This document shows positions 7,150 to 28,325 of a DNA stretch of 64,000 nucleotides, in pieces. The translations under genes were made by a program, and so were the position numbers. The notes under the pieces are model-generated. The model saw nothing but the letters and a program-made list of their open reading frames with translations. It searched no databases and was not told the DNA's origin. Location: NCBI GenBank assembly GCA_964199315.1, contig OZ116702.1, positions 21,886,001 to 21,950,000 on the forward strand, read 5' to 3'. Position 1 is the first letter of the stretch, and every line of letters starts with the position of its first letter. Source of the DNA: Orbicella franksi (Eukaryota).

Positions 7150-7408
7150 CGAGAAAATACATTGTTTACAATCGCCTTTCAGTCAAAGTGATTGACAGGA
7201 ACGCGTGTAAGGATTAATTGCTATCGTTTTCTGAGTGATGTGATTGGACAAGAGGCTTGCTGTGACATGACCATAGTGGATCGAATCTGAACTTGTTCTG
7301 CGCATATAGAGTTGTTTGGGAAGGAAGGTTCGTGGGATTTTGGCGGAGGGAACCTTCTTGAATTTTGAACTATCGACGATGAAATGAGGACTATCGAAGG
7401 ACAGGGGA
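7150..7408 (+). promoter_or_regulatory. Probable promoter/5' UTR of the MH1-MH1-PHD gene
   Basis: Lies directly upstream of the first in-frame ATG (7409; in-frame TGA at 7385). Contains gattgac and gattgga (inverted CCAAT-like) motifs, and CpG-rich sequence continues into intron 1. Confidence 0.45.
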
Positions 7409-7856
7409 ATGGAGAAAACCTTGGTGCAATCGGCTTCCCCGAAGAGAGGACCGAGCTCTGCCGATGCGAATTTAAGTATCGTGTTAAATCTTATGTGTCA
7501 TACAACTTGCCATCGCCAAGGAGGCGAAACTGAGAAATTTGCAAAGAGAGCCATCGAATCGCTGGTGAAAAAACTTCGAAAGAAGTCTGAAGAGCTCGAC
7601 TCACTGATCACCGCTATCACGACTAAAGGATCCAAGTCGTCAAAATGTGTTACGATTCAGAGAACTCTAGATGGCAGACTTCAAGTTTGTGAGCGCAAGG
7701 GCTTTCCGCATGTGATCTACGCTCGGTTGTGGCGATGGCCCGACATTCAAAAAATGGAGATGAAACATTTGGAGTTTTGCCGATACGGTTATGATTTGAA
7801 GTACGAGAGTGTTTGCGTCAATCCGTATCATTATGAGAGAATTCGCAGTCCAGCCG
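7409..7856 (+). CDS. Exon 1: SMAD4-like MH1 domain #1
   Basis: [38 protein letters not shown]...[34 protein letters not shown]...[10 protein letters not shown] aligns closely with SMAD4/Medea MH1. Phase-1 donor G|GTAAG at 7856/7857. Confidence 0.95.
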
Positions 7857-10800
7857 GTAAGGGTGAATTTTTTTTTCGTTTTTGAAGGTTGTGTGTTGGG
7901 TCAATTGTGTGATGTCATGTAGGGCAAGAGAGACCAAGAGAACGCACGCACAGTACATGAACGTACGTGATGACAAAACTCACACCAACGCTATGATATG
8001 TGACATTTGTTCAGTGCGCAGCGTACTTAACCTGCATAATCTTAGTTAATTCTAGCAAATCACCTAACCAGATATATTTTTTATGTTCGTTCTACCAGGG
8101 AAAATAAAACAGAACTTTTTCTGTAGCATCTCGATCGGGGGTAATATTTTTGTAATTCACTCAATGTTTCCTTCCGACATCTGATCGAATCATTCGACCG
8201 TATTGTCGTAATAGGATCATTCTGACCTTTGGAAAAGCTTACAGCTCTCCAACTTTTCGTCCGATTGCTTCTGCTTGAACATCGTGCGTTCATTCGGTTG
8301 TACATTATTCGCCTCGCGAATTCATTAGCGATAAACTTGTCAAAGAGCGAAATGCAAATTTCCTTGGGAGTGGGCTCGCCAGTGTTTTCCTCTAAGCTTG
8401 GCCATTGTTTGGATAACGAGCCAGCGGCTATTTTGCATTTTTAATTTCTAGTTGAAAGTCGCTTCGGTTTTTGGCCGATTTTTCGCGCGATTTTGCTGCG
8501 AACGCCAGCCAGACTCTGTCTCAGACGGCTTGAGCTCTGAATCACGCCAAATGACTGGCGATCGTTTCGTGTGGGGCAGGAGAATTATTTTGTCTGGGTT
8601 TTGTTTAAGTATTATTGTTGGTTAGTGGTCATTGTCTGGCTGGAACGTTTCTTGTCTGAAAACGTCTGAAATGTCGTCTGCTTTGGCTCTAATTTATTTT
8701 GGGACGTGAATTTATTTTTGTCTAATGCCTTAGCGGGCGCGCGCGCTATTTGGAACCAATTTTTTAGCCAAAAAACACACTGAGAACAGTGAACGTGCTT
8801 CAGTCAAGGAGTAAACAGAATACCTAATTAGTATTCATGAATGCGTCATTTGAATATATTTTTATTTCAGTCTCTTTGGCTGTCTAGACGTTAGCGTGAA
8901 AATTACCGACAGTTCGCGATCAGTTTTGTAAGGGATTACATTCACGCCATGTTTACCAGCGAAAAGCACGCCATGCGTGTTCTCGGCCGAACAGATTTAG
9001 GAGCGCGGAATGCCTTTTGAAATTTAGAATGCCATTTCTGACAACGCTTATTGTTTGTAATTGTGTGTTTGACGTTTAGAGGGTTATTAATTTTGTCGCG
9101 AAATTCTGTTTTTTTTTCGATTGCAAAAAATTGCCTTACTTCGGCTCTTTCTCAAATTGTTTTCGAAATGATTTTTCTCGAACAAGTTACCCGTAGAAAT
9201 TCGAATCATAACTTTGTCGCCATTAATATTTTTCATCTCTTGACAAACAAAACCACAAAAGCCACGTAGGTTGTATTCAAATCGCTTGTTCGGTTTCATG
9301 TCACGTAATTAAAATTAGTGTTCGTTCGCGCGGCACGAAAACGTTTTTTTCTCGGTAAAAGATGCTTATTCGATTTTTGAGATGAAATGTGGTATTTGAA
9401 GTACTTTTGTGCTTCTCATGGCTTACTATCGCTTCAAAATGTTCGATGCGGCGGCTTCTTCTGTTTACATCATTTCTATTTTGAACCCTGGGGGATCAAA
9501 ACCAGCACTGTAGACACACTAGTGGTACAAGTTTTCAATTTATTGTTTGGTATTGTCTTGTTATTTTTCTCATCCGTGTATAGCTATACATCTGAAGCCC
9601 CTAGATAATAAATGTGGCGTGACTTTTGCAATAAAGGATCACATTCCTGATATTGTAAATCTCAAAAGAATGTTCAAATTTGTTGGGGCAAAACAATTGT
9701 TTGTACCCATGACTTGACATTGCCTGTGGGCAAAATAAATTATCTTTAACCTGAATAGTGGTAATTTATTTGCTTTCCCTAGCTTCAAAACCGTGTTTGT
9801 AAGAAATACTTTTGAAACGGTCAATTTTTATTGTGTTTTCCTAGCAATGAGTGTATGCAAAATTATAGAAGTAAAACAAATCAAATGATTCTTTACTGGT
9901 GTTTTTTTTTTTCAGAATGTCAGAATATAATGTCAGAATACTGAGAACATTCGATTTAAGATTACTTTTGAGGTTGTACTTAATACCAGTAAGTTTGAAA
10001 TTGTCTGGGATGAGCAAAAATTTGAGACAGAATTTGTGTGAGAGATCAGTTTTTGACACAAGTGACTGGTTATTTTGCCTGGTTTCAAGCCTTCAAGTAT
10101 ATTGTGACCTGTGATCTCGACACCTACTGATCACGACAATGCAATCCAGGGCAGAACATGTTGTTATGATAAAATCTGGATGAGCGACCTAAAATTGCTT
10201 TGTTTTAGCTTTCAAGAAGGTGGAAAACATTGCTTGTGTTTTGTTTGCATGGGTAGTTATTTTGGATGATTGGATTTTATTGTCGCATAGATGATTTGTG
10301 ACTCATTTTCAAATTCTGTTCAGTATGTGACAGCTTTTATCTTTCAAAAAAGATATGTTTCCTTTCTTTTATTACAGTTAAATAATCTTGGCTACTCTGA
10401 AAGAAACGTACACATTTTTAAATGTCTTCATCTCCTACACTTTACTCACAAATGACTCTGAAAGTCTTGTTGTTGTAACCAATCTGGAATCACATGCATG
10501 AAAGATACATGTAATTTTTTCGTACATTGTCGCTGATATTCAGGTGAACAGAGGTTAGAAAGCTTAAAATTGTGACAGCGTGACAGTCGCGTATAAAGTG
10601 TTACCTCTTGGTGTTCAACTGTGAAAGGTGTGTTCTTTTGTTGAAAAGGAAATAATTTTCCTTTTTGGGAGGGGCAACGTGTATTATTGATTATTTTGTA
10701 CAGGTGGTGAATTTTTTTGCTGCAATTTTCACCTTTTTCTCAGGATCTTGTGAAAGTAAATTTTAGAAAGTTAATTTTGTTATGTCAATTTTGCCCAAAC

Positions 10801-13800
10801 ATTTTGTATTTTTATCAATCAAGGAGTCTTTTGGCCAGTTCAACTTGAAATTTGTGTCATTTTTTGCATGAACGACAACTTTCATATTTTTGTGGAAAGT
10901 GATAATTGTTGTTTTGTAAGTTTTATTAAAATGATCTGAATCTATTGTTCCTTGTAGCTGCTGCTTTTCTTCAGTGGGTTGCTTTTACAGGCGCATTAAA
11001 TCTAAGACACCAACTTAAAGTTTGTGTCACGATACACAGTAGGATAATATTCTTTACACCAGTGTTCTATATATAACGGTACTGTAAGATGTGTTTAGCA
11101 AAAAATATTTGAAAATTTGACTAGGTTGTCCTCTGATTTTACTCATTTGTTCGAAACTACATACACAGTTGTTTAAACAGCAGATTTAACTTGAATACTA
11201 CACGCAAAATCAATATTTGGCTATTTATTATTTTGGCTAAGCCATGTTGTTGCATTCATGTAGAGTGAAGGTAGTTGGTTTCTTGTCATGTAACTTTGAG
11301 CTTTGTGTATTTATAAATCTAACTTCAGAAAACTACACCTTGCTTAATAAGTAGTCCTGTAACATGATTCTCTGTTTACATATGTGTTTATTAGGATAGT
11401 AGAGCGTTTAATCTTTTTGTGTCAGTCATCTTTTTTTACGTACAAATAAATTTTGAGGACATGGAAGTATTGTTTAAGTAGTATTTCATTTGTTCATTTC
11501 AAACAGTAGTGTGTTAAAGTTATCATGTAATGAAGTATAGCTTGGATTAAACAGTACCGTGGTCAGACAGATATATTTCAGCCATAAATATGCTTGTTTG
11601 GAAATATGCGTGTACAGCAGACAAGTGCACCAGACCATTGTAATCGCTGTTATCATTTCTGAGTAGAATAGAGTTTTGTTTGTAATATGTTTAATATGTT
11701 TGGTATGTGTGATATTGGTTGTTGAGCTTGAAAATATGAACGAAGAGACACTACTACATATTAGATCAGAAAAAGCGAGTGAAATATTTAGGCAGCTTGA
11801 ACAGACATTATGGGCATAAACTTTTCATGTCATGTGTCACTGACAATTAAACTTCTGTAGATTCCTCAATCTGTCAGTTTTCTTTTGAAGGGAATTAATG
11901 GTTTTCTGTTAGCTGAAACATATACCAGTTAATTTGATGTAAAGAGCGTTTTGTTAAACATTTCCGCTATAGATGCCTGGGAGCAATTTGAAATGTTCTG
12001 GTGTCAAATGTCAGACTGCGTAGATATCACTTGTTGTTTAAAGTATCAATCTCTTGCTCAAGTTATTTTTAGTTCCAAGAGCAGAACTTACACCTTGCCC
12101 ACTTGTCTAGAATTTTCAGAGCTTTAAGTGAGGCAGTAGTAATTTTTGACAAGTAGTTTTACTCAGACAGCAATGAAAGACATCAGCAAATATTTTGCTC
12201 ATTACTGTCTGAAAGTCAGATGACAAGTGTGTAATTTTAACTGTCAAACCAAGGAGGTTAATAACAATAATACAGTGTATTTTTGTAACATTAATTTACG
12301 TGGGATATTGTTTCAGTTTGCTTCTGATTAGGACTAATGTTTGCAGGCTAATCTCACCTGTAAGTATTGTGACGAGTGTCTTTTTATAGACGGCATGGTT
12401 ATTTTAAGCTCAGACATGAAATCATGAATATATAAATAATGCATGTGTTACACTTGTCTGAACCATATGTTGCATATTCATGCTGTCGGTATCCGTGTCT
12501 GAATTAGTGCGTATCAAAGTCACGTAAAAAGAGTGACAGAAAAAACATTGCATATGATGCATGTTTGAGCCGTGATATCATTACTTCAAAAAGTCTTGCG
12601 TTCTCACATGCTTTTGTTAGGAGATTTGAAAATTGGCAAGTTGTGATTATAGTTAGCTAAATGATACCTTTGATTGGCTAGAGAAGGGAGCATCACATGA
12701 CGACCTTGAAGAGCGTTAGAGTTAAGGAGACCAGACAGGATCTTGTAGTGTATTATATGTAATATTTGGCACGTGAGCAGAATTCAAGCGGAAAATTAAG
12801 CTCTGAATTTGTGGCAATGAATGCATAAAATATGTTACTCACTGTGCGTTCTGGATCACACTGAGAGATTATTTTTGTTCTGTTTTTTTTATTTGTGTGT
12901 GCTTACAATGTACTGTTGCTACCAAATTGATGATTAGATGTTTTGTGGTGATTAAAAAAGAAATTGCGTGGAATATATAATTGCGGTGATCTTGACAACA
13001 CTAGAATGTAGACATTCACTACATCATGGATCAAAATCTTTCTATTTCATGGTGCTTGAATATTGCCAGACAGACAGAGAAACAGTTGCTCTTTTGTCTT
13101 AATTAGAACACTGAATTTGGGTTTTAAAGTTTGTGGCATTGTCTTGTGTAAGAAAATAGCAAGGAAAATGATTCAGGTACATGTTGTTATTTATTTGGAG
13201 GAGTTTGCCTTAGAGTTATGTTGAGAAGCTTCTTGCAACGTTATTAAAATTGTGTTTTTGTTATACTGTTAATGGCAAAGCAAATGTGGTAAAATTACTG
13301 CTATTACAAGTTAAGTATACATGTATAAAATCCATCATAATCTTTCCCCAACACCTCAAATGTACACGTACACAATCTAAGAAACTCTGAGATAAATTGT
13401 TATATCCGCAATCCAAGAACAGAATATGCAAAAGGTAGCATGCACTATAGAGGATCTGTTCTGTGGAACAAGATTCCATTGGAAATCGGGCACCTATCTA
13501 GTCTAAAACTGTTTAAAACCTCACTGAATGGGAAAGATTATTCTTAATGTACTGTAAATTAGAGAAAGTTTTATGACATAGGTTTTTACTGTAGGCTAGT
13601 TAATTAGTTCGTTAGTTAATGTAATGTAATGTTAGTAAATCCATTCCTGTTAATATAGTTAATTTATTCTTTGTAATTTTTTACATGACTCCTAGGTAGA
13701 CCATTTTTATGATAAGATTTTCGTGTTTAAATAAAGATTGATTGATTGATTGATTGATTGATAAGTGCTGGAAAGCAATTTGTGTTATGTTCTTTCAAAT

Positions 13801-16800
13801 CTCTATTTTGTCAGACATATATTTCGTAATTGTGTGCACAAATAATCTGCTGACTCAATCTGTAGGCATATATGAAGTAATCAGGGGTCAACACTAACGG
13901 TAGCCAACTAGCCACAGACTAGTAGAAATTTAGTTTTGGCTAGTAGGTTTTCGATTCCCACTAGCGACTTTGGCTAGTCAACAAAATGAAATTGGCTGAA
14001 CTAGTTTCTGTCTTCTTCAAGGACGACAGACACAAGATGTACACTTTTCTTGGAAACAATGTCAGAATTTCAATGTGGACATATCATGGTACTGGGCATG
14101 TGCTGTTCAGCACGTATGTCTACTTTTCTGTGGTACGTAAACGGGGAACTGAACATGTTAATTTTGTTGAAAGAAATATTTGACAAACAAGACAGCACAC
14201 ATCAGTGCTCTTTTTTGTTACGAAATTTTTTTCATGCGCAAAATAGTGTGGAACTGCAAAAGGATAACATTTCATTTGGCGTAACAATATATCAGTGATA
14301 CGTCGTGGTATGCATACTTACAAACTTACCACTACAGAAATAATTGGATGAGAAAAATTTAGTTCCTTCGACATTTAAATCAGTTGTTTTTGGCAGTCGA
14401 ATTTTGCCAACGACAGTTTAAAGTATTGTTCAGATAGTTGTTTTGCTTTTGAAACATTTCTACGGCATCTGTCTGTGAAGAAGTCTCAACAGTGACATCT
14501 TGGGGGTCTCGCTATTTTTCCAAGGAAGTCTCAGAGAAAACAGAGTTCTGAAAGTCTTTTCGGGAACTGGAGCTTTTTTGAAACTAGTTTAAGTACAGTA
14601 TAATTATCAACATTATGTATTTAAGAGAGTGGCTTGCGTTTTGCTTTCAAGTCTTGCAAATTCTGTTGTTATTGGACCCACCTGAAATTTTCGTGACATG
14701 TTAACTTTGTGAATTTCGCGATTTAAGACTCGCATAAGTGTTGGGAACATAACACATTATGTTACTGTTGACATGCAGTTCTGCGATTGCATTTTTTTTT
14801 ACTTTTGGCATTATTGCACCTTTGATAAAGTCAGTTTACTAAATTCAAAGATCATGTTTAAGTAACATTGCCTGGGAAACAAATTTTGTGTTACTCAAAA
14901 ATGCAAAAAATACAAATTTTTGCAAAATCGCGAATTAAAGTGTCACGAAATATGCGCACCCCCAAATTGCAAAATAAACCTGTTGCGAAAATTTCAGGTA
15001 ATAAGGTTGCCAACCTCAACACTTGGCAAGTTAAAAACTGTTTTTGGCTAGTAACATCTAAGTAGTCACCAGCCACGTGTCTAGGAAGTTGAAAAGTTAG
15101 TGTCGAGCCCTGGGTAAAAAATATCCTTTAGTTAGCGATTCAATTCTGGAGAAGCTGTCAATTGAAACAAACCATGAATCTGTATGATTTGTGATTTCTA
15201 ACAAGTTTCAAAGCAATTGTGTTGTACAAACAAGATATTCACCACAAAAAGCTAGGTCATCTTGTTGCTTGCTCATAGTGTAAAATCATATTTGTAAAGT
15301 AGTCGACAATTTCACAAATTTGGGTAGACAATGTCCAATGATGACTTTTATTTCCAGCACTGCAAGATGCCCATGGAGTGATATGCAAAAGATAATGATA
15401 TTGTAGTAATCTCTTTAGATCTGAACAAAATTTAATCTTTTCATTCCCTAATGCAGCTGCAACTCTTTCTGTGAAAGCAACATCTCCAAACTGTGACAAA
15501 TGTGCATTATCTGTATTAAAAGAAAGCCCGCCTCAGCCAGTAACAACATATGATCAACCAAAGTACCTGGAGGCAGGACCTAGCAACTCAATACCTGGAC
15601 CAAGTAACATTCCATGTTCTGCAGATCCATGTCCTATCATTGTACGCAATTTACTTTGGCATGCTGTTTACAGGCATCAAAGCACTGATGCAGAGAGCTT
15701 CAGTAGACGGGCTATTGAATCCCTGGTGAAGAAACTAAAAAAGAAATTCTTCGAGCTGGACTCACTGATTGTAGCGATAACTTCTAAGGGACGGCAACCG
15801 TCCAAGTGTGTCACTGTGCAAAGGACCATGGATGGAAGGTTGCAAGTCGGGGACAAGAAAGACTTTCCACATGTCATCTATGCTCGCCTCTGGAGATGGC
15901 CTGATGTACACAAGATGGAGATGCGGCATAAAGAATTTTGCCAGAATGGTTATGATACAAAACGCGAAAAAGTTTGTGTTAACCCATATCATTATGAAAG
16001 AGTTCAGCCACCAGGTATGTGAGAAGCAAATGTTTTGCATGTCATATCATGTTACAGATGTACATTACACCTGAAATAAAGGAGTAATTTATAGTCATTT
16101 TCTTATACTTTATGTATTTATTCTTGAGTTGATTATCAAAATTGGCTAAACAAAGAAGGAGCAAAACTTCACCAAAGGTGAAAATGCTTTAGAGAATAAG
16201 GGGGTCTTTGTTTTAGAGTTTTTTTGGTCTTTGTTTTAGAGTTTTGGGGTCTTGGAATCTTAGGGTCTTTGGGTCTTCATTTTAGAGTTTTTGTTTAAGA
16301 GACACCCCATCACTACATAGGGTTTTGAAACATTGTGTAATGTTTATACCTCTCAGCCACCCTCTTAATTGGTATTTTACCATTTTTGCCATTTCTGCTG
16401 GAGACACCCCTCATCGTACAAAAGTGTACCTTTACGACACACACTACTCTTAGAATTTACTAAGTTTTTATTGATTTTTATTCATAACTAGGTTGTTGAC
16501 AATGAAAGTTTTGCAATTGAACAAACTTCTCAAAATTTTTTATTTCATAAGTATATGTAAACCAAAAAATAATTAAGTTACTAAAGGTAATAGTTGCACA
16601 TATGTGATGCAATGCAGATAAAATGTGAACATAATTTGGCAACAAATAGCGATAATGTTTGCAAGTAATAAGTGAAAATGATGATTGAAAACAGATAGTA
16701 ATAATGGTGTCACATTGTCTTTGTCAAATAACAGGTTACCAGTTTCTACCAAAAGCCTTGTTATTTGTACCCTTTGGGTTTAAAACCAGTGTCCTTAAAA

Positions 16801-17787
16801 AACACTGTTTCTTCATCTAAAACCACCAATTTCTCTGGCTAGAGCTCAGTTGATAGTCTTTTAGTGATATTCTTTATATTGTGGAATGCAAAATACATAT
16901 TAGACCAGGTCACCAATATCATAGTTATTTAAAAGGGATGCACGTTTTTTGTGATTTTGTGTCACAAACAATACAAGAAACAAAATACATCATTAGTGGT
17001 CAAATTAACAGATTCCATGTTGTTTCTTTGTTTTTATGGCTTTGTTTCATTATTTAATAGATGAATGAATGACATTCCAACTTGCATGTGTTAACTCATA
17101 TGTGTACATGTTTTCAGCTGTTATCTTGATTGTTCCTTCTTGTTTCAAAAACGTAGACTAGGTTTCATCGCCTTTATAACATGGTAACTTAAAGAGCATG
17201 CAATTAAGTATAAGCTCCCAATATTTGCACTGTTAATTAACATCCTTCATTATTGCTCCCGATGCTAAATGGATCTGCAGGTGTTTTCTGAGCCACCATG
17301 AGGCCTAACACAATAATCTGCTGTGTTTTGTCGCCTTATCAAAATAATACTGATCAACTGTCCATAAATGACCAAGTTGTATTAATTTTGACTTCTTGTA
17401 AAACACTTCAGATTAATATCCCTCTTCTGGATTTTACTCATCTGTCACACTACACTCTTGAAACAGTTTCTTTCCAGTGTGAAAATATAAACTTGTGGCC
17501 TTAATTTATTTGTGTCCATTCCTCCTCCCCCTCTGGAATATCCCTAGGCTCTGAGAAGGAAGCCTTATTCACCTACTGGCATGAAGAGAGATGATGGTGA
17601 TGATGATGATAACCCCACCCCACCCCACCCCTCCAGAATTTGCCATTGTCCTCTTTAGTTGGGGTATCAATATTTTCTGGGTCTACACAATTCTCTGAGT
17701 AGAATCCACTCTCTTTGTTCTAAAACTGGCTTAAAATATATATACATAGAAGGCCGAAACAGTACTGTCTGCAGTTAGTTAGTTATA

Positions 17788-17824
<37 letters not shown>

Positions 17825-20800
17825 GCAGGAGACAGAAGTCAGTATTGTACAATTTTAATTTCTTGTAAGATGATAGAATATGGTTTTTAATTTCAAGTGT
17901 TGCTGTTTTTGTTTTTAGATTGGTTCAGAGCTTCTTTGTATGGAAATTCACATAAATCACATAGCAGTTCAGGTTTGATTTGTTTTTCAAATTTGTTAAC
18001 AAATTTTGATATGGTTAAATTTAATATAAAAACTGGTTGAAAATTTCTGAACTTATATTTAGTGCAGAAATGTGAGCCAATTGGATATCAAATGCAACAT
18101 GGTTTTGTAGCCAGTTTTTGTTAGAAGATACATTTTGGCAATGTTTGCACTTGAAATGAACTGAATCTGTACTTGCCCAATATACTTTACAAATTCAACC
18201 ACTCACAAAACATTCCTGTAAATCAATTTTTCTGGCCATTATTTATGGGTGTGGATGTTGGCATAAACACATTCAAATTTTGTTTGAGGTGTGGAAGAGA
18301 TTTGGTCAGCAAAGGAATGTTTTGTTGTGTATAATGTTTGTAGCTTGAGCATCTTCAGGATACAGGCAAGAATTTATTAATAAGCAAACTGACAGTGTAG
18401 ACAACATGAAAATGTTTTGCAGTAACGTTAAAGCATATACTGATTCCAACTTGGGCATTTCAGATTTTAGCCTTTAATAAATGTTTTTCAACTATGTGCT
18501 ATGTCCATATTTTGTGTGCCTTTTTTAACTTTTTGTTACATTTTTTGTACAAACAGAAGTAGACAGCAGCCATAAGAGTGATGAGGTAAGGAATTCACTT
18601 AGTACATGTTTACAGTCCCAGGTGTTTAGTCCTCAGGGTGCAAGCCTGAATACTTTGGCTATTATTTTTCATCAGGGTTCTGGTATCTTGCTGTGGTTTT
18701 GCTGTTTGCCATAATTTTTACAAATCATCATAACAAAAAAACAGGCACAATTGATGTTGGCCATAGTATCGGACATTGTTGGGGCTTATCCTGATTTTTG
18801 TACCATGAAGTGACAAGGGATATTTCTACTTAGCCCCCTTGGATGGGATGTTAGTCTCCCCAGTGCCAACTTTGTAAGTACCGTTTTATAGACCTGGCTG
18901 GGGAAAGGCACAGTGAGAGTAAAAGTGTCATGTCCAAGAACACAACAAAGTGATCTCTAGCAATGGACCAAACCTGGACCACTTGATCCAGAGTCTAGCA
19001 TGATAACCATTAGGGTATTTCATATTGCCGACCTCGAGAGAAGGATCCAAATATTTTTGCAGTTCTTACACACAGCATTTGTTATTTAATTACTAACACA
19101 GTGCATAATAGAGAGGCATGGTGACCACTTGGTTAGTGCACTTGTCTCCAGATTGAGCAGTGTGGGTTTGAGTCCTGGCCTGGGACATTGTGTTATGTTC
19201 TTGAGCAAGACACTTAACTCACACAGTGCCTCTCTCCACAATGGACTAGCATCCCATCCAAGGGGGAGTAGAAATACTCCTAGTCACTTCACTGAAACTG
19301 GAGATAAGTGCCAGCCTGATGGGCCACTTGGCTTGTCTACAGACTTAGCCTTTACCTTACAGTGCATAATATCTGCAGTGTGTATTCTGTTGACTTAAAG
19401 CTCAGCTTATATGCTCAAAGCTAATGAACCCATCCTTTTTCAGGACACAAATGGAGGATCGTTATCAAATGAAAATAGTTTGGGCGAGAAAAATAATTGT
19501 TTCTGTCCGCATACCAATTCTTCTCAAGGAAGGAAGAGACCAGAAATTCAAGATTCAAGTTTTTTCAACTCCAGATTAAAGCGAAAAGCTGATTTTGATG
19601 GAAACAGGTATTGATTTTCTATTTCTTGTTTGACTAGATTAAGGAAAGTTATGTAAGTGTTTTCATAGCCTGTGAGTGAGTGATTATTTTTAGTCTCTCA
19701 GACTCGCTTAATTGTTTTCGTGATAACATAAAGCAACCATTATAGAATGTATGGCTAAACTCGGACTTAAGGTTCATAGTTTGACAGTTTTTACAGTGCT
19801 GCATGCTGCACTGTACCATTGGCACTTAAGATGACGTTTTGGAATGAGATTATGATAACAAAAACATTTCAAACATATTTTTTGGGTTATGTTTTAATTT
19901 GTCAATAAATTGCAAAACATGAGGGAGGCAGAGTGAACTGCCACCTCTAACAGTCCTTGCACATGGATTAGCCAGTTCAAATAGTGGCCATACGAATTTC
20001 ATCAAAAAGATGTCAAAAAGTGTCAAACATTTAATCAAAACTATTTCAAGTGGGAACATTGTGGCATGCAGCACTTTAACCTTTCATAGCAACATAAATG
20101 AAATAATCAGTTAGCAATATTGAACTCATCAAGCACCAAATTCTTAAGTTATTCTCAAAAGCAATGTGCCACAGTTAGGAGAATGAACATTTCCAGCTTG
20201 TGTTATTTTTTCACTCATAACAGGACAATGTCAGCTTGCTCATCAGTTAGTTACTCTAGTGATAGTGATGAAGATATCGACATTGAAGCAGATTCACCAA
20301 AAAGAACAAAGGTAATGACCAAAAAAAAGATGTTAAAAAACAGTTTTGGTGCCCATCATGTGACCCTTACTTTACAGTGAAATAACCCCAACTGGTATTT
20401 CATTTTGCTTCAAGTGTTACTGAGCTTGTGGAGCCTTGTGGATGGATTCTAGAGATGTTATGATCCATTAGAAAGTGTAACAGCTGGCTATATTTTTGCA
20501 GATAGTTTAATTGAACAAGGTTTTCTTCTTATATTCTTATATTTTTATTATTCTTAGTCTTTTATTCTGATTTTTACAGATTCGTTATTTTATTAGTTAG
20601 TTTATTTTACTCATGCTTTATATATTTCTATGTTTCTTTATTAATTTTTATCGGTGAGATCTTTTAAAACTCATTGTAAAGCACTATTGGATAGTAATAG
20701 AAATAGCGCTATATAAATAAAGTATTAAAATTATTATTATAACAATAATTATGTCACAAACTATTAANNNNNNNNNNNNNNNNNNNNNNNNNNNNNNNNN

Positions 20801-23800
20801 NNNNNNNNNNNNNNNNNNNNNNNNNNNNNNNNNNNNNNNNNNNNNNNNNNNNNNNNNNNNNNNNNNNNNNNNNNNNNNNNNNNNNNNNNNNNNNNTTAAA
20901 ACAATTTTAACTCTTCTTCGAGTACTTAGTTGAATTGTTCCATTCAGTGTTTTAATTTCAGCTTTCTCCAAGTGAAATTTCTGAGAAACGAAGTCCACTT
21001 GCAGTAGATGAGAGATTGAATAATTCTGATGGTACACCAAATTGTGTTTCACAAAGGTGAGTTGTTAGGTGTGCACTATTTATTCTAATGGTGGTATATA
21101 ATTCTCTGGTGTACTTCCTTGTATAAGAATAAGAGCTACGTAGTTCAAGTAGTCTAGTTGTGTTTGAAGTGGCAGTAAGAAAAAGAAAGCCAAGAAAGGG
21201 AAATGAAATGTCTAGAGCATTTATCCATTAACTTTGCACATTGTTTGTATCATTTCAGAGTACGTTGTGCCTTGTGTAACTGTGTGAATAACAGTGTGTT
21301 AGGACAGGGAGACCTGATATGTTTCGGCAGAATATCATCTGGCTTTCAAAGACACTCTAGAAGTCCACAACGACAACAACAGAATGTTACCTCAGCTTAC
21401 CGACACTCTCATTACCCCACTGCTGGTGGTTCACATCCTTCCCAGGGAAGGAAAAGCCCCCGTGATGGAGAGTTTCAAGATCACAGGCAATATTCCTGGA
21501 CATACAGGGCTGAGGCTGCTAACTCAACAGTGCACCTGAGCCCTCAGATCCACGGGGAAGCACCTGGCAGGTACTGACACTTACTACAACATTTCAGCTC
21601 CCACTTTCATGCTTTACACATGAACTAAAGCCTTTTCCATCCCTGCAAATAAATAGTACAGTCTGAGCTGAACCTTTAAAGTCCAGATTCCATGGCAATG
21701 TGGAACATTTCTGCCTCTTGCTGAGGAATGGGGTGCAAACATTCAGACTAAGGGGAGGGGAGGACTCCCATGTGAAAGGTCAGGGATGCTGGTCAGGCAG
21801 CTGGTCCTTCCTAGTGTAGAAATGAGTACTGGCAGATTAGTGGGGAAAAAAATTGGCCCAAATGTTGGGAAGTAATCTGTGATGGAAGAGGGTTTCATTG
21901 CTTTGATACTAGTTGTAATTTACATTAACTTACAAATGCATTTTGTTGGCTGACCCCCAATAAATTGTTCATCACACTTGTTGACCTGTAGTTTGTAGAA
22001 AAGCTCCTGAAAAACTTAAAATGTGATTATGCTTCATTGACTCTCTTAATTCATCTCTTTACATCTTAATTGCACACTAGAATCCCTGATGGAAAATCCA
22101 GCACAATAAACAATTCTACCAACAGCAGGCAGTCACCAGCTCCCCATGAAGATCTTTCCAGTGTTGGGTTTGAAGAGGAGCCAGATCTGGTTGATTTGTG
22201 CAACGTGTCTGGTTATGTATGGGTGCATGATAGGTGTGCGGCATGGACACTGGCCTCCTTAGCAACCAAGTCATCAGTAGAGTTTACAATAGACTTAACA
22301 AGTCAGATTCTATCAAAGGTTTGTTGATGTTACTTGTAGGTTATCTCTAGCTTCAGTTGTGAGTTTCCTTACTCTTTGTACAGCATCATTGTACAGACAG
22401 TACCTATTAGTTTGTGTTTCTGTTTATTCTCATCATCTATCTGCTTTAAACTGTATTGACTTAGTATCTGGAATTAGATGAAGATAAAAAAAGCTTTATG
22501 GTTGAAATGACTTGCCACAAGCATGGGACAAAGAAAAAAAATCTGAGTCTCCAATAGGATTCAAACCCATGACCTCCCAGATACTGGTTGGACACTCTAA
22601 CCACTGAGCTACAGAGAGACTCTTGGTCTGCCAGGCCATTTCATTAGGGGCGCGATCCATTCAACCAAAATTTCCAGAAATTTTGGTCTAAAACTGAATG
22701 GATTGGTTCGGTCCAACTGAAAAAGTTTTGAAAAAGTTGGCCTACCCTTTGGGGTGGACCACTTTTCTTCGTTGGACTGATCCGATTGAAATTGACTGTT
22801 CCGTTTGACCTTTCTGATCCATTCTCAATCTCAGTACCTCGCTGTTCGGTACTTTCGAAGTTCAACATTGAAGAAAACAATTATCATTGCAGCTTTTATG
22901 GATTGTTAACAGCGGATTTATCTGTGTTACTCGTACATCCATGTGCAGTAACAACAGTTGCATAGCTATGTTATGCAGTGTATGTTGTGGCTGTTAAAAA
23001 TCATGAATGGTCTATTTCCCGAGAGAATTTCATTATTGGAAAATAGTTTTTGAAGATCTTTGAACTCAACCGGCAAAAACATGGGAACAGTCTGCTCAAA
23101 ATAACCTCTTATATGGGTTAAATTTCTATGCATGAAATGGCTTACACAATATCATTGAAAAAATTGAAATAGTCATCTAAACTCTAACACAAGCAACAGT
23201 GATCCAACATCTGCCATTTTAAATGAGTGTGAAACTCTTTTTGTGAGTGGAATGAAATGAGCCCTTCTGGACCCGTTGCGATCCATTTGCCCCCAAGAAA
23301 TTTTTGAACCTCAATTTGGTTGAATGGATTGTGCCCTAGGTTCATCTGGGAAACATATCCTGCAACTGCTAGGATCAGCATTGTCAAAAGTGTAGCATGT
23401 GATGAGTGAAAGATTCTTTAAGGCTTTTTTTCTTTTTCCTAATGACTGTACTAGTGTCCCACATAAAAAGTCACACAACTTCTCATTACCGGTATTCTTT
23501 TTTGCAGAAGTGTTCTTTTTGTGGTCGTTTTGGTGCTAGTGTTGTATGTGAGATGTCAGATTGTGGAAGAATATACCACTACCCTTGTGCAATGGCTGCT
23601 AGGACATATCAGGTCAGCACTACATCTTGGCCTAATGATAAGTTAGTCAGATTCAGAATAAAAAGATCCTGTTTTTTTTTGTAACAAAAACTAAAAACCA
23701 AAACAAACAAGTAAAAAACAAAACACAAAAAAGTTCCCATCATCTTGCCATGTGACACACCCATGGTAGATAGTTTGGGATATTTTATTTCAGTTTTTTT

Positions 23801-25514
23801 GTAGAGCATTTTCTTTCTCATAGTTTTTCCTTGCCACCAGGCTTTTAGCCAGAATTTTAGCCAGGGTTTGAAAAGTGGGCATCCAAAATATGCTGTAGGG
23901 ACTTCCCAAAGGAACAAATTATAAAGCAAAATCTGAAAAATAAAACAATTTTTTTTACTAAATGGTTGTCCCCAGGATGGCTGGACACCCATTTGGCTAA
24001 AAGCCTGTTTGCCACCAACCTGTCCAGAAGTTTGCAACATTTGAGAGGTGAAGTGACGGAGAAGCTTATTCTCTCTCTTTTCTCTCATAGTAAAAATTAG
24101 GTTTTGTCATTTGAAGGATCCATCTGGTGTTTTGTTTGTATTGCAGGATATGAAAACTATGAAACTGTACTGTTTGAATCATGAAGATGTTATCAGAAGA
24201 ATAGGTGAGCTGATGAATTACATTCTATCATTGGTGTATCAAAGATAGGAAATGGAGTACATATAAATGGGTGAAAGATTAAAGAGAAAGAGATCTTAGT
24301 TTGTAATTTTACAAACTCTCTGCCAATGTTCTCATTCAAATCCAAATGGTGGAGCTGGAAAATTACAATTAATTTTCTTATGCTGTGTTTGACTTCCAGC
24401 ATTCTGTGACAAATGTCATCAAGGTGGTGAATTATCACAACTGCTACTCTGCACAAAATGTACCTGCCATTATCACAGTTACTGCTGTTCACCTCCTGTT
24501 CGTGCTACAGAGTCTGTCAGGGTGGGCTGGGAATGTGCTCAGTGCAAGTCTTGTCAGGCTTGCAGGTGAGTTTTTAAATACAGTGGAACCCCTATTAAGT
24601 GGCCACCCTCAGGGAAATGGGAGGTGGCTGCATAATACGGGTTGGTGTACCTTGAATATTTTTCACCATCGTGTTAATTTCTTGGTGAACATGGAGTCAC
24701 TTCAAGGCAACATGATAAATGTGTGTTTGAATCTTTTTATCACTCGTCATCTATCTCGGACTCTTATCTGCCGTTGCCTTTTCCAAAACAAAGTTTTTAA
24801 ATTTTGGGTGGCTGTTTAATAGGGGTAAAGACAATAGAAAAACCCTCATCTGGATGACCAGAAGGTGGTTGTGGCTGCTTAATAGAGGTGGCCAGTTAAT
24901 AGGGGTTTTATTCACAGTATTTTACTGACAATAATTTTGGGACTTTGATAACTCACTGCTTAACAAGGGGTGGCTGCTTAATAGTTGGCAGCTTAATAGA
25001 GGTTTGACTGTATGCAATTTAACAGTTACTGGTTTACTATGAATGACGGTATGTTAGATGTGTCTATCTTTGTTGATAGAAAGAGTGCTTTTAGTATTTG
25101 CTCAGCTCAAAGTATGAAGTGCGAGAGATATTTGAACCCTTAGATAAAGCCTTGGTAAGGGGTGCTGAATGGTAAATACGAGACTTTGTGAGAAGGCGAG
25201 ACTAGTAAGCCTCCATCCCGTCGCTCCTGGGGACAAAAGCGTTTTATTTACAATGCCGTTAATGAATGGAACACTTTACCCGATGAAATTAGGAACAGTA
25301 TCAGTATTTTTAATTTTAAAAGTCGAAGTAGGGGTATTTCTTAATTTTTAATTATCATTTTTTTTTTTTTACTGTTTTCTATATTTCTATTAGTACAATG
25401 GTTAAATGTTATTATTATTTTTAATCTACTATTTCTTTAGCTTTTGCAATTTTATTTTTGCAGGGCCCCACTGAAAACCACATGTATGTGAAGTGGGCTC
25501 CCTGTTGAAAGATC

Positions 25515-25580
<66 letters not shown>

Positions 25581-28325
25581 GTATCTTTTCTTTACTAGCC
25601 CAAGACATTTGGCTCTTCAATAATTATTGCAAGACTGAGACTTCAAATTGAATAATTTCACTCTTTAAAATGGATAGCATATATCCTTACAAATGATTTT
25701 TTTTTTATTTTAATCATTTCACAGGCATGGTTCAATTAAAGACAAGCTGCTGATTTGCCGCAGCTGTGACAAGGGTTACCATTCTCTGTGTACAGTACCT
25801 GTGGCTAACTCTACAGAAAAGTTTGGCTGGAAGTGTGAGGTATGTAAGCAGCAGCTGGTGACCAGAATTAAAAGTTGGACTGAAATTCTAAGAACTATAC
25901 AGAGGAAAATTATGTATGAAAACCCCTTGGGAGAAGCAATACCTTAATCTTGAGATCACAAAGGTCATTGGATCATTTCCCCCACACTTTTTGGGCTTCC
26001 TATAAGCTAAGGAAAGGTCTGGAAATGCGAAAACATGGAAAAATAAGCAGTAACATGGAACGACGTTTTAGAGTTGTCATGACACCATTATCAATTTCTA
26101 AATGATTGAAATAAACTGTTACAAATAGTTTCTCTGAGGGTTAGCTAATTCAATTAATTATTTATGCAATGTCACGCAAATAGTTTGGCTTGAATTGAGT
26201 CCAATTGGATGTTTAGAGAAGGTGTAAATTTTCTAATACTAACAGCAACATTTTGTGCACCAGTCAGCCATTTAAACAAGCGAGTGAATGAATGTCATCT
26301 TCCATTGGCAAGCACCCTAGAGACAAACACTTTATTGTCCTCAAAGACCTTGACAAACAGTTTTCCACCCTTAAGAAGATAGTGAAAGAATAGATAATTT
26401 TGATTGTTTTGCGCACAAAATGTTGCTAATTAGATAATTTTCGCCTTTTCTTAACATCCAATTAGACTCAATTTACTTGACTGTTGGTAGGTCAATGCTT
26501 GACCCATTTTGTCTATAATAATCTGTTTTCTTTCTTAACAGAAATGTCGACAGTGCAGGCAGTGTGGAACAAAGAAAACATCACGCTGGCACATTGATTA
26601 CACTTTATGTGACAAGTGCTACCAAAACAAACACAAAACAAGTCGATGTCCTATGTGTAATGAAGAACAGGGCAACCAGAAGGTGATCCAGTGTGATTCA
26701 TGTAGCAGGTACGTATGTACATACAAGTTAGCACAGACCCCAGCTGCTAATTGGGTATCTTATAACTCCGATCTGAAATGTGTCCCCCAGTACTAGGAGG
26801 TTGTTCATTGAAGAAAACCTTCAGACAAAAGTATTTAAAGTTATCTTATTATATTGACATGAGTGTTTTACTGGAAAATTCACCTCTGGTAAAATTGATA
26901 CTGAGTGGTATTTCCCATCCTCACGGGTGAGTATATCGATGGCATCATTTCCCGCTTTTTCACAGTTGTTTAAGGAAACAGTTAGTCTCCCTATATAATA
27001 AAGAGAATATTCTGCTTACCCGCTTGCTTGGTCATAAAATATTGTTTTTACCACTCAAAAATATAATTCATATCTTTGCGGCATTGTGTAGTAACTGCTA
27101 TAATTTCTTTTGTGCCTATTTCTTTTTACTGCGTGCATCAAAGAACAGGCAAAAAACTCCAGTTTTGGAGGCTAATCCTAGAGGCTTACATGTATTTTCC
27201 TACTTAATCAGGGCTGTTGATGTTGTTTCATGTAGGGTGGATCAATCTGTAAAGTGATCTTCATGAAGTGTTTCACATCAACTTGGCATTATTGGACTAA
27301 ATACTGGCTTAGAAACAAACAAGAAACAATATTGTTGTTAAAAAGCTTGGAATGTAATAATGTAAAAAGATTGTATTACACAGTTAGTATCATCCATTGT
27401 CAGAAAACATTTGTACCAAATGTACAAAAAATGTACAACAAGGGCAAAAAAGTCTCCTGCCCTCAGAAACTTGAACCTTGGTGAAGGGTCACCGGAAATG
27501 GGTCCCCAAATTGACAGTGATTTAGTTTTTTATTGATTTTATTCGTATCTTTTTTTCATTTTTCCAATTTATTATTATCCTATTAACAGTTTTTTACACG
27601 GCCCCATAAGCTATATTAGCTTTAAAACCCATCATGTTTAAATAAAAGATGTTGTTGTTGTTATGTAATGTATAACTGATGAAGTGTATGTAAACACCTC
27701 TATGGCACCTGTATTTTTGTTATAAAGTCTTTGTATTGGCCGTAGTAACAAATCGGCCCATTGAGTGGAAAACTAGAAAATATCTAGAATTATCCCTGGA
27801 TCCAAGCAGTTTAATAAGCAAGCAGCAAAATAATTAGAAAATCTCTTTTTTGTTGTCGTTTCAGATGGATTCATACTGTTTGTGATAATATCACTGAAGA
27901 AATCTACAGCAAACTTGAACAAGATAGCAGCATAATCTATGTGTGCAAAATTTGTAGAGAGGAAGTTGAAAATATTAAGAAAGAATGTAGACGAGAGGTA
28001 AGTAGTGATCCTTAACATACATATACACCATGTTGATTCGTGAATTAAAAGAGTGCGTGACTGATTAATCTAGTTATTTTTTTTTTAGATTAAAACAGAT
28101 CCAACAGAGTTGGAAGAAGTATCTCCAGTCACAGCTATGGTTTTATCCCAGGAGAGTTACAAGGGACAGAACACAAGACACAGCTCCGTTGTCACCACCA
28201 GCATGGCTGCCACACCCTTGTGTATGTCGTGGATGACATCAGAGCCTGTCCAGTGGTCTCGTTTACGAATGACCTATTCTTTTGAATATTTCATTATGAA
28301 ACAGTATGGTAAAGTGTTACTTTAG
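7409..28325 (+). CDS. Putative ~988-aa chimeric protein: 2x SMAD4-like MH1 + Ser-rich linker + KMT2C-like ePHD-PHD-PHD-PHD (no MH2, no SET)
   Basis: Sixteen GT-AG exons with mutually compatible phases: 7409-7856, 15457-16014, 17919-17972, 18557-18585, 19444-19607, 20224-20311, 20962-21056, 21259-21570, 22081-22318, 23508-23612, 24147-24204, 24400-24565, 25725-25839, 26542-26708, 27865-27997, 28089-28325. Total 2967 nt with no internal stop. Small linker exons 3-7 are supported only by splice signals and phase, and intron 6 contains an N gap. Confidence 0.72.
8511..8889. promoter_or_regulatory. Cluster of Smad-binding elements (GTCT/AGAC) in intron 1
   Basis: Twelve GTCT/AGAC cores in 379 bp (8511, 8518, 8523, 8592, 8634, 8654, 8664, 8676, 8720, 8870, 8882, 8886). 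Seven are full CAGAC/GTCTG. Includes a perfect GTCTAGAC palindrome (8882-8889) and GGCGC at 8736. Confidence 0.5.
13262..13762 (+). mobile_element. 5'-truncated LINE (L2/CR1-clade) 3' end
   Basis: Encodes ..[52 protein letters not shown] (stop 13545-13547), a typical L2/CR1 ORF2 C-terminus. Followed by an AT-rich 3' UTR, AATAAA and a (GATT)n tail at 13736-13762. Confidence 0.85.
13882..15112. mobile_element. hAT-like non-autonomous TIR element
   Basis: 17-bp TIRs CAGGGGTCAACACTAAC / GTTAGTGTCGAGCCCTG (2 mismatches) and subterminal TGGCTAGT repeats. No clear TSD remains. Confidence 0.65.
14680..14999. mobile_element. MITE nested in the 13882-15112 element
   Basis: Perfect 14-bp inverted repeat ACCTGAAATTTTCG / CGAAAATTTCAGGT, plus internal inverted GTGACA and TTCGCGATTT motifs. 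Confidence 0.65.
15457..16014 (+). CDS. Exon 2: Pro/Ser linker + SMAD4-like MH1 domain #2
   Basis: Polypyrimidine tract plus CAG acceptor at 15456 (phase 1). [14 protein letters not shown]...[34 protein letters not shown]...[14 protein letters not shown]. Phase-1 donor at 16015. No in-frame ATG before the domain, so an upstream coding exon is required. Confidence 0.93.
16200..16310. repeat. Degenerate tandem repeat (ggtctttgttttagagtttt)n, MITE-derived
   Basis: Repeated GGTCTT/TTTTAGAG units ending in GAGACACCCC. Confidence 0.55.
17784..17824. repeat. (TA)n microsatellite followed by poly-T
   Basis: Read directly. Confidence 0.95.
18806..19014 (-). mobile_element. tRNA-derived SINE (minus-strand copy)
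   Basis: Its reverse complement aligns with the 19092-19360 and 58065-58310 copies (tgtgttcttg..acactt..actc.cactgtgcct..catcccatccaagggg..agtagaaata). Confidence 0.75.
19092..19360 (+). mobile_element. tRNA-derived SINE
   Basis: A-box-like tggttagtgc and B-box-like gggtttgagtcctggcc, then the same body as the other copies in this window. Confidence 0.8.
20570..20745 (+). mobile_element. LINE/SINE 3' tail remnant (L2-like)
   Basis: tgtaaagcact...aaatagcgctatataaataaa...(att)n terminal signature. Confidence 0.5.
20768..20895. other. Assembly gap (128 N)
   Basis: Run of N within intron 6 of the MH1-PHD gene model. Confidence 0.99.
21259..27997 (+). CDS. Exons 8-15: KMT2C-type N-terminal zinc-finger cluster (ePHD, PHD2, PHD3, PHD4)
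   Basis: [17 protein letters not shown]...EDLSSVGF...WVHDRCAAW; [47 protein letters not shown]; [94 protein letters not shown]. Collinear with human KMT2C ~aa 130-520 as I recall it (CAFCYCGEKSSLGQGDL, WAHHRCVEW, YHYPCA, CDKGYHTFC, WVHLECD). All zinc ligands are intact. Confidence 0.93.
22500..22640 (-). mobile_element. tRNA-derived SINE
   Basis: On the minus strand: gtagctcagtggttagagtgtcc...ggtcatgggtttgaatcctattggagactcagatttttttctttgtccc, a tRNA-like head with A and B boxes. Confidence 0.75.
22648..23336. mobile_element. PIF/Harbinger-like MITE
   Basis: TIRs GGGCGCGATCCATTCAACCAAA / TTTGGTTGAATGGATTGTGCCC with a 3-bp TAG direct repeat on both sides. Confidence 0.75.
23838..24007. mobile_element. 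hAT-like MITE
   Basis: 14-bp perfect TIR CAGGCTTTTAGCCA / TGGCTAAAAGCCTG and 8-bp TSD cttgccac / tttgccac. Confidence 0.85.
24581..25010. mobile_element. Tc1-mariner/pogo-like MITE
   Basis: TA|CAGT...ACTG|TA termini with repeated GTGGC..CTTAATAG subterminal motifs. A partial sister copy starts at ~47185. Confidence 0.8.
25172..25579 (+). mobile_element. 5'-truncated LINE (L2/CR1-clade) 3' end with (TTA)n tail
   Basis: Encodes [32 protein letters not shown], then a 3' UTR and ~21 TTA units (25516-25579). Confidence 0.8.
26853..27110. mobile_element. Interspersed repeat fragment, family uncertain
   Basis: atattgacatgagtgttttactggaaaat...aattcatatctttgcg resembles a repeat type I recall from coral genomes. 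Related-looking sequence at ~52940-53400. Confidence 0.45.

Follow-up and report, generated by a model that had tools for sequence, protein, structure and literature searches.

What does an MH1 domain do in a protein that carries two of them? MH1 is the DNA-reading half of Smads, and its weak binding to single sites is made useful by the trimers that the MH2 domain drives after receptor signalling. The question is raised by a stretch of 64,000 nucleotides of the coral Orbicella franksi (GCA_964199315.1, contig OZ116702.1, positions 21,886,001 to 21,950,000; hereafter the window), in which each of two open frames of the + strand (7409..7885 and 15471..16022) encodes one whole MH1 domain. An earlier note on this DNA, made from the sequence alone, took the two copies for the outcome of an internal exon duplication. 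We find that both MH1 exons belong to a single expressed gene on the + strand, of whose 16 coding exons (7409-28325) they are the first and the second, and which encodes a product of 988 residues. The protein is composed, in this order, of an MH1 domain, a linker of ~55 residues, a second MH1 domain, a disordered linker of ~290 residues, an ePHD, three PHD fingers and a conserved C-terminal motif. The data demonstrate how the gene is built, that it is expressed, conserved and under purifying selection, that both copies retain the key residues, and how copy 2 is predicted to fold. We read the whole as one cnidarian gene in which two duplicated Smad4-type MH1 domains and a PHD cluster would make a signal-independent occupant of Smad-type elements, with a probability of about 0.6.

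Both MH1 exons belong to one expressed gene

To map the exons, the transcript contig of protein P0001 and three more transcript contigs were aligned to the window, two from a more distant coral (L014 and L015) and one from a congener (L016, 92-98% nucleotide identity), which fixed exons 8-16. P0001 was found when copy 2 was searched, without a profile, against 1.8 billion proteins. It is a protein of 962 residues encoded on a 4327-nt assembled RNA contig, hence on a spliced transcript, and clusters with RefSeq models from four Acropora species. Both MH1 domains and the PHD region are contained in a single open reading frame in the related-coral transcripts (P0001, L014/L015 and L016/L017), and the first junction is 7856|15457 in every such contig that was mapped (P0001, L014, L015 and L016). 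Each of the 15 introns has GT-AG ends, and the reading frame stays open across the gene. Only 3 of its 988 residues distinguish the predicted product from the Orbicella faveolata protein XP_020624985.1 (LOC110062426), whose annotation is "uncharacterized protein" alone. The parts of the gene are the following:

7323..7408, +, 5' untranslated region, minimum extent; L016 aligns from 7323 at 98% nucleotide identity and L015 from 7316
7409..7856, +, coding exon 1 with the start codon and MH1 copy 1 (residues 46-145 by Pfam); phase 1 end, donor CCG|GTAAGG, junction to 15457 in L014, L015 and L016
7496..7525, +, loop 1 of copy 1, 10 residues versus 6 in SMAD4 (4-residue insertion)
7676..7699, +, beta-hairpin of copy 1, RLQVCERK; equivalents of R81, Q83 and K88 kept, E at the G86 position
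7857..15456, +, intron 1, 7.6 kb; contains the GTCT/AGAC-dense stretch 8511-8889
15457..16014, +, coding exon 2, linker (residues 150 to ~203) and MH1 copy 2 (Pfam MH1 at 15705-16004); phase 1 at both ends, acceptor AATGCAG|CT, donor CAG|GTATGT, RNA depth
15657..15686, +, loop 1 of copy 2, 10 residues including the 4-residue insertion; short extra helical turn in the predicted model
15837..15860, +, beta-hairpin of copy 2, RLQVGDKK; R, Q and K kept, D at the G86 position
17919..17972, +, coding exon 3; RNA joints 16014>17919 and 17972>18557, GT-AG and frame
18557..18585, +, coding exon 4, a 29-nt micro-exon; RNA joints on either side, L016 at 100%
19444..19607, +, coding exon 5; RNA joints, L016 alignment, frame
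20224..20311, +, coding exon 6; RNA joints, L016 alignment, frame
20962..21056, +, coding exon 7; RNA joints 20311>20962 and 21056>21259
21259..21570, +, coding exon 8, part of the linker with conserved CALCNC..LGQG.LICFGR; RNA joint into 21259, L016, frame
22081..22318, +, coding exon 9, start of the ePHD; L016 alignment, GT-AG, frame
23508..23612, +, coding exon 10, ePHD; L016 alignment, frame, Pfam
24147..24204, +, coding exon 11; L016 alignment, frame
24400..24565, +, coding exon 12, PHD; transcript alignment, frame, PDB sequence match
25725..25839, +, coding exon 13, PHD; transcript alignment, frame
26542..26708, +, coding exon 14, PHD; transcript alignment, frame
27865..27997, +, coding exon 15; transcript alignment, frame
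28089..28325, +, coding exon 16, conserved C-terminal motif and stop codon; transcript alignment, frame
28326..29677, +, 3' untranslated region, approximate; L016 aligns to 29677 at 88%

The intron preceding exon 7 contains 128 N in a row (20768-20895), which touch no exon.

Expression was assessed with polyA RNA-seq reads labelled as this species (X21-X24) and aligned to 15301-21300 only, a 6-kb span that is exceeded by the 7.6 kb of intron 1. In X23 and X24, exon 2 has a depth of ~10-15, and reads joined at GT..AG boundaries support all splices from exon 2 to exon 8 (16014>17919, 17972>18557, 18585>19444, 19607>20224, 20311>20962 and 21056>21259). The joint between exons 2 and 3 is covered by 9 + 9 reads in the two runs, as many as the later joints, and exon 2 is therefore seldom skipped. 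Introns within the aligned span have no reads, one repeat excepted. Read depth immediately 5' of exon 2 is consistent with an exon start at 15457, and no pile-up of read starts was reported in the aligned span. The splice between exons 1 and 2 is documented by the related-coral transcripts and by the RefSeq model. The runs X1-X14, labelled metatranscriptomic, were not used for expression; they hold 58-74% of the words of a mostly intronic stretch and hence contain genomic DNA.

These data bear on a different arrangement, in which the two MH1 exons end up in separate products (from two genes or from alternative first exons), or most transcripts omit exon 2 and the usual protein has one MH1. Exon 2 starts and ends in phase 1, as the earlier note had reported, so that skipping it keeps the frame, and the joint between exons 1 and 2 was not observed directly in the Orbicella franksi reads. 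That joint is nevertheless present in full-length transcript contigs of four or more further coral data sets and in P0177, a 5'-truncated transcript that still carries it. Moreover, both domains occur in the RefSeq models of eight species, the ratio of nonsynonymous to synonymous substitution rates (dN/dS) is 0.05 or less in both the linker and copy 2, and the read counts and read starts around exon 2 are those given above. Separate products are thus very improbable and already largely refuted. A few sequences that might pass for isoforms were rejected as gene models in which a gene was split or an intron read through: P0184 from Actinostola, with one MH1, and P0152/P0151/P0156 from Acropora digitifera and A. 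cervicornis.

A separate signal was found in the intron between exons 4 and 5, where 19239-19292 reaches an RNA depth of ~50-100, compared with ~10-15 in the exons, with hundreds of loose read ends and several variant letters. This stretch looks like a dispersed repeat, whose transcripts would stem from many other loci.

A cnidarian gene outside the canonical Smads

The genome of Orbicella franksi has seven MH1 matches. Five genes combine MH1 with MH2, namely three receptor-regulated Smads (R-Smads), one Smad4 and one inhibitory Smad (I-Smad), and the only MH1 domains beyond these five are the two in the MH1-PHD gene. The MH2 domain (PF03166) has six matches in the genome, all on contigs C2 and C9 and none on the contig of the MH1-PHD gene, and Pfam found no MH2 in P0001 or P0292. 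The MH1-PHD protein is not a Smad in the signalling sense. Since it has no MH2, the known route to a Smad trimer or to receptor activation is closed, which agrees with the earlier expectation that the protein would not form a Smad trimer. Among the canonical genes, two R-Smads are arranged in tandem ~10 kb apart (C9:29148682-29162040) and the third lies back to back with the I-Smad (C2:38431658-38459353).

In addition to the two MH1 domains, Pfam recognized an ePHD (zf-HC5HC2H) and three PHD fingers in P0001 and in the RefSeq protein, and no other families; SET, FYR and HMG domains were not among its reports. Without a SET domain, the protein is no methyltransferase. Among PDB sequences, the PHD region is most similar to the PHD structures of KMT2D and KMT2C (E 5e-29 to 3e-21), and this likeness suggests that the PHD cluster couples the protein to histone tails. 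The earlier note had not drawn on this cluster, whose presence behind the MH1 pair alters the function to be expected.

Orthologues with both MH1 domains occur in stony corals (Acropora, Porites lutea, Oculina patagonica and Orbicella faveolata), in the sea anemones Nematostella vectensis (LOC5509135) and Actinia tenebrosa, and in Hydra vulgaris (LOC100199160). In both trees described below, Hydra is joined by four more sequences: two eukprot entries, one transcript model from eukprot and one assembled RNA contig. The C-terminal motif encoded by exon 16 is also conserved out to Hydra. After this two-MH1 family, the next proteins in the match list are ordinary Smad4. The MH1-PHD gene is conserved in every cnidarian group sampled.

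Both MH1 copies keep the residues with which SMAD4 reads DNA

Both copies are unambiguous MH1 domains (PF03165, gathering cut-off 25), with 130.5 bits (E 3.2e-38) for copy 1 and 119.4 bits (E 9.3e-35) for copy 2. They align with each other over 139 residues without any gap and at 64% identity (BLASTP E 3e-63). The alignment of copy 1 with the MH1 chain of human SMAD4 (5mey, E 1.5e-64) has a sole gap, which is an insertion of four residues.

The earlier note had stated that both copies keep the DNA-reading hairpin R-x-Q-x4-K, the four zinc ligands and the basic helix VKKL(R/K)KK, and all of these could be located. The hairpin is RLQVCERK at 7676-7699 in copy 1 and RLQVGDKK at 15837-15860 in copy 2, the zinc ligands lie within KCVT, EFC(R/Q) and VCVNPYH in both, and the helix is VKKLRKK in copy 1 and VKKLKKK in copy 2. 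In SMAD4, Arg81, Gln83 and Lys88 read the bases, Asp79 positions Arg81, and the role of the zinc ligands has likewise been described (PMC5727232). The equivalents of R81, Q83, K88 and D79, together with the four zinc ligands (C71, C115, C127 and H132), are invariant in 22 out of 22 MH1 domains, 11 of copy 1 and 11 of copy 2, from Anthozoa and Medusozoa.

The two domains are also the most constrained parts of the protein. Measured against a coral transcript at saturating synonymous distance (dS 0.66-1.95), dN/dS is 0.005 in MH1 copy 1 and 0.003 in MH1 copy 2, as compared to 0.05 in the inter-domain linker, 0.09 in the PHD region and 0.20 in the long linker. Neither MH1 domain has a single amino-acid change relative to the congener.

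Origin of the MH1 pair

The note had argued that one SMAD4-derived MH1 exon diverged and then duplicated, and had cited changes that the copies share in relation to SMAD4. The first of these, a four-residue insertion after helix 1, holds in full: the loops at 7496-7525 and 15657-15686 correspond to CHRQGG in the coral's own SMAD4. That ordinary SMAD4 (L003) has CHRQGG, KNEL and AFD, and carries neither the insertion nor KMEM nor GYD. All fetched proteins were scanned for the distance from helix 1 to helix 2, which is 16 residues in 57 family MH1 domains and 12 in 157 Smad4-type MH1 domains; the insertion occurs in 0 of the 157 and in all 57 family domains matched at that spacing. When the 22 family MH1 domains are aligned with Smad4s and R-Smads, the four extra residues fall at the same place in both copies of every species and in no other Smad. 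In a few medusozoan second copies, the insert is longer than four residues.

KMEM and GYD, which had been listed as further changes private to the pair, are indeed present in both copies (copy 1 7751-7795, copy 2 15912-15956), but GYD and the final M of KMEM occur in anthozoans only and represent lineage-specific parallel changes rather than a common inheritance. Medusozoans have AFD and KMEL in copy 1 and GFD and K[MIL]EL in copy 2, so that GYD and KMEM were not inherited from the exon before its duplication. The anthozoan changes from KMEL to KMEM and from F to Y would be either parallel changes or an old, short gene-conversion tract between the copies. The two copies also share an acidic hairpin residue that the earlier note had missed.

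The exon boundaries proved uninformative on this point. Both MH1 exons do end in phase 1, although one codon apart rather than at the same alignment position (..RSPA|G in copy 1 and ..QPP|G in copy 2). In the genome as a whole, each of the seven MH1 exons ends with a G|GT donor in phase 1, after ..NPYHY and 6-7 further residues, and the position of the donor is identical in all but copy 1, where it lies one codon later. The phase-1 boundary after the MH1 exon is thus ancestral to all seven, and it carries no weight as a sign of duplication; the shared phase merely says that the copied unit was a whole MH1 exon.

Phylogenetic relations were inferred from maximum-likelihood trees of 129 columns, with the insertion columns removed and with R-Smads as the outgroup. 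A first large tree had been rooted on the I-Smad branch (length ~8); this root was unreliable and was replaced by the R-Smad outgroup. Smad4 together with both copies is separated from R-Smads with support 100/100, which places both MH1 copies on the Smad4 side rather than in different Smad clades. The family lies either inside Smad4 or beside it (support 76/79). Copy 1 and copy 2 are sisters in both trees (88/86 and 91/79). Each copy forms a clade of its own (95/73 and 80/58 for copy 1, 100/99 for copy 2), and each of these clades includes both Anthozoa and Medusozoa. The duplication is therefore older than crown Cnidaria.

The same comparison keeps another origin in view. The two MH1 domains could have been recruited separately from Smad4-type genes, or one of them could continue the ancestral Smad4, in which case their likeness would result from parallelism or gene conversion. 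Approximately unbiased (AU) tests reject neither copy 1 with SMAD4 (p 0.51) nor copy 2 with SMAD4 (p 0.46), and copy 1 is closer to SMAD4 (74%) than to copy 2 (66%). The changes from L to M in KMEL and from F to Y also show that parallel changes in both copies did occur in Anthozoa. Identity to the Orbicella franksi SMAD4 is 74% for copy 1 and 64% for copy 2, and copy 1 is, by this measure, the conservative copy. Given the AU tests, the sister relation rests mainly on the insertion, the N-to-M change in KNEL and the acidic hairpin residue. These three characters are common to both copies in both cnidarian branches, the insertion being of the same length and at the same place, and are absent from the 157 Smad4-type MH1 domains; furthermore, the copies are sisters in trees built without the insertion columns. 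We consider an origin without internal duplication quite improbable, and have moderate confidence that a single diverged Smad4-type MH1 exon was duplicated before crown Cnidaria. The expectation that the copies would be sisters is thus borne out with moderate support by the trees, which place them on the Smad4 side, either inside Smad4 or beside it.

Predicted fold of the MH1 pair

The length of loop 1 sets the oligomeric state of MH1 domains, as published chimeras have demonstrated: four residues, as in Smad1/5/8, lead to helix-swapped dimers, and six or more, as in Smad3, Smad4 and Smad2, to closed monomers (PMC7810915). In the AlphaFold2 model of copy 2 (predicted local distance difference test, pLDDT, 90.7; predicted TM-score, pTM, 0.85), the insertion forms a short additional helical turn between helix 1 and helix 2. 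The best PDB matches of the model are SMAD4 MH1 chains in the closed, DNA-bound form, with TM 0.93-0.96 by target and a root-mean-square deviation of 1.4-1.5 A, whereas the deviation from the helix-swapped Smad1/5/8 structures is 5-7 A. The long loop 1 of ten residues and the copy 2 model both point to closed monomers and not to helix swapping.

The tether between the domains, ~55 residues in Orbicella franksi and up to ~80 elsewhere, is variable and rich in Ser, Pro and Thr. Taken with loop 1 and the copy 2 model, this leads us to see in the MH1 pair two monomeric heads that are independent of each other and flexibly tethered. Such a pair would be suited to clusters of Smad motifs with variable spacing and not to one fixed palindrome.

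A possible occupant of Smad-type elements

The steps by which this protein may have arisen and may act can be put together as follows. A Smad4-type MH1 exon would have gained the four-residue insertion in loop 1, the N-to-M change and the acidic hairpin residue, and a tandem duplication of this diverged exon would have followed, before the lineages of living cnidarians separated. Judging from the residues and from published structures, each MH1 domain would fold as a closed, zinc-stabilised monomer and read a GTCT or GGC(GC|CG) type of site with its R/Q/K hairpin; it is from residue retention that we infer DNA binding of the two copies. The flexible tether would allow the two heads to sit on two nearby sites at variable spacing, and this bivalent binding, which the earlier note had proposed as high-avidity binding of paired SBEs, would need neither receptor phosphorylation nor an MH2 trimer. 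With the PHD cluster coupling DNA binding to histone tails, the protein could be a signal-independent occupant of Smad-type elements, which either competes with Smad complexes or marks the elements.

Several observations weigh against this reading. In 22 out of 22 family MH1 domains the hairpin position that corresponds to Gly86 of SMAD4 is acidic (E in the first copy, either D or E in the second), and next to it Cys (copy 1) or Gly (copy 2) takes the place of Ala85, whose backbone touches DNA in SMAD4 (PMC5727232). The acidic residue could lower the affinity for DNA or shift the specificity away from GTCT/GGCGC. AlphaFold2 on the tandem region, with 21 family sequences, gave a pLDDT of 42 and a pTM of 0.27 and is unusable for contacts between the domains. 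The AU tests described above do not reject a grouping of either copy with SMAD4. In the Orbicella franksi reads, the joint between exons 1 and 2 was not seen directly, the aligned span beginning at 15301, and 15457 is absent from the loose ends listed. Finally, X21 and X22, two runs of one sample from another study, have no reads from the gene at a sampling depth similar to that of X23 and X24, both of which belong to one study. Expression depends on the sample, and may depend on stage or tissue.

The substitutions at positions 85 and 86, in every family MH1 and next to a backbone contact, would, together with the longer loop 1, suit a protein in which the MH1 pair is no longer mainly a reader of Smad motifs. 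The two domains could then recognize another DNA sequence, or serve as protein-binding modules (for example, for importins or transcription factors), and targeting to chromatin would be left to the PHD fingers. The strong constraint on the MH1 domains fits any conserved interaction, DNA binding included. This explanation has to contend with the SMAD4 base-contact residues, Asp79 and the zinc site, which are invariant across Cnidaria in both copies, and with the copy 2 model, which superposes on the DNA-bound SMAD4 MH1 at 1.4-1.5 A. On balance we regard it as unlikely, and prefer occupancy of Smad-type elements. More tentatively, and with rather less confidence than we place in the reading as a whole, the protein could act as a fixed, signal-independent reader that pairs Smad motifs with histone tails and so sets BMP/TGF-beta elements open or blocked before Smads arrive; the acidic hairpin residue may also provide it with a motif preference of its own.

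An unusual stretch of intron 1, 8511-8889, holds 12 GTCT/AGAC motifs in 379 nt, including one palindromic GTCTAGAC. Across the window the mean is 2.5 (sd, standard deviation, 1.8) and 0 of 1273 sliding windows reach 12, and the stretch is not a tandem repeat. It could be a candidate binding site for the product of the gene itself or for Smads.

Why this matters follows from the architecture. Here MH1 has been kept twice per chain, without MH2 and joined to histone-reading fingers, under strong constraint since before the split of coral, anemone and Hydra. If both heads bind DNA, a constitutive cnidarian protein sees the same elements as the BMP/TGF-beta effectors, which bears on how BMP axis patterning is gated in cnidarians. 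The MH1-PHD protein also offers a natural test of how MH1 valency and spacing enter into the choice of sites. To our knowledge, a signal-independent layer of this kind on Smad elements, if true, has no bilaterian counterpart.

The gene in the literature and its neighbourhood

The gene is already annotated, as uncharacterized only, and its architecture is undescribed in the literature that we found: searches of the searchable literature for tandem MH1, for MH1 with PHD and for the locus names returned no description of two MH1 domains in one protein or of an MH1-PHD fusion. An earlier survey listed four Smads only in Nematostella (PMC3169577). The blastula of Nematostella expresses a gene named NvSmad4-like (JQ959583) in its central domain; the gene goes up with a GSK3 inhibitor and down with dominant-negative TCF (PMC3531958). 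NV2.15308, a 'truncated' smad4-like gene, has been plotted among BMP effectors in single-cell data (PMC11846459), and likewise in PMC13193452. The Nematostella 'smad4-like' gene is probably the orthologue of the coral MH1-PHD gene, because the latter is the sole coral MH1 gene outside the canonical Smads and LOC5509135 has the same architecture; JQ959583/NV2.15308 would then be the same gene as LOC5509135. If the orthology is true, the 'truncated smad4-like' BMP effector of Nematostella is a different kind of protein.

Downstream of the MH1-PHD gene, the window contains an open frame at 44872-45216 (+ strand), which we take to resemble an Fe/Mn superoxide dismutase exon; the next gene downstream is presumably of the SOD2 type.

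Comparison with known systems

The closest known relative of both domains is the MH1 of SMAD4 (3QSV, 5MEY, 5MEZ, 5MF0 and, from Trichoplax, 5NM9). It has the same R81/Q83/K88, Asp79 and Cys3-His zinc site, is placed on the same Smad4 side, and is followed by the same phase-1 intron (one codon later in copy 1). The coral domains differ from it in a loop 1 of ten residues instead of six, in the acidic position 86 and in Met for the Asn of KNEL. The coral protein as a whole has two MH1 domains per chain and a PHD cluster, and lacks MH2, the Smad4 activation domain and the trimer interface. This sets it apart from the truncated Smad4 as which the Nematostella smad4-like papers treat the gene.

The ePHD and PHD cluster is of the type found in KMT2C/KMT2D (MLL3/4; 9YL3, 9ATN, 2YSM and 6MLC), and some orthologues have been named 'histone-lysine N-methyltransferase 2C-like' by NCBI, although the coral protein has no SET domain.

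Tandem MH1 domains without MH2 are also present in P0053 (two MH1 and a C2H2 finger) and in P0082 and P0089 (a Q-rich N-terminus and two MH1). These proteins are not orthologous to the coral one; they lack both the loop 1 insertion and PHD fingers, and the copies of P0053 group with R-Smads. P0053 (L018) lies on a contig of a JGI environmental sample and P0082 (L019) on a scaffold of a Tara Oceans metagenome; the source of P0089 is ENA contigs.

With regard to the mode of binding, the nearest parallels are the helix-swapped MH1 dimers of Smad1/5/8 and the dimers of NFI, whose match to the copy 2 model is weak (TM ~0.5). These likewise place two MH1-type heads on neighbouring or palindromic sites. 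The Smad1/5/8 and NFI dimers are non-covalent, whereas the two heads of the coral protein belong to one chain and are joined by what appears to be a flexible tether.

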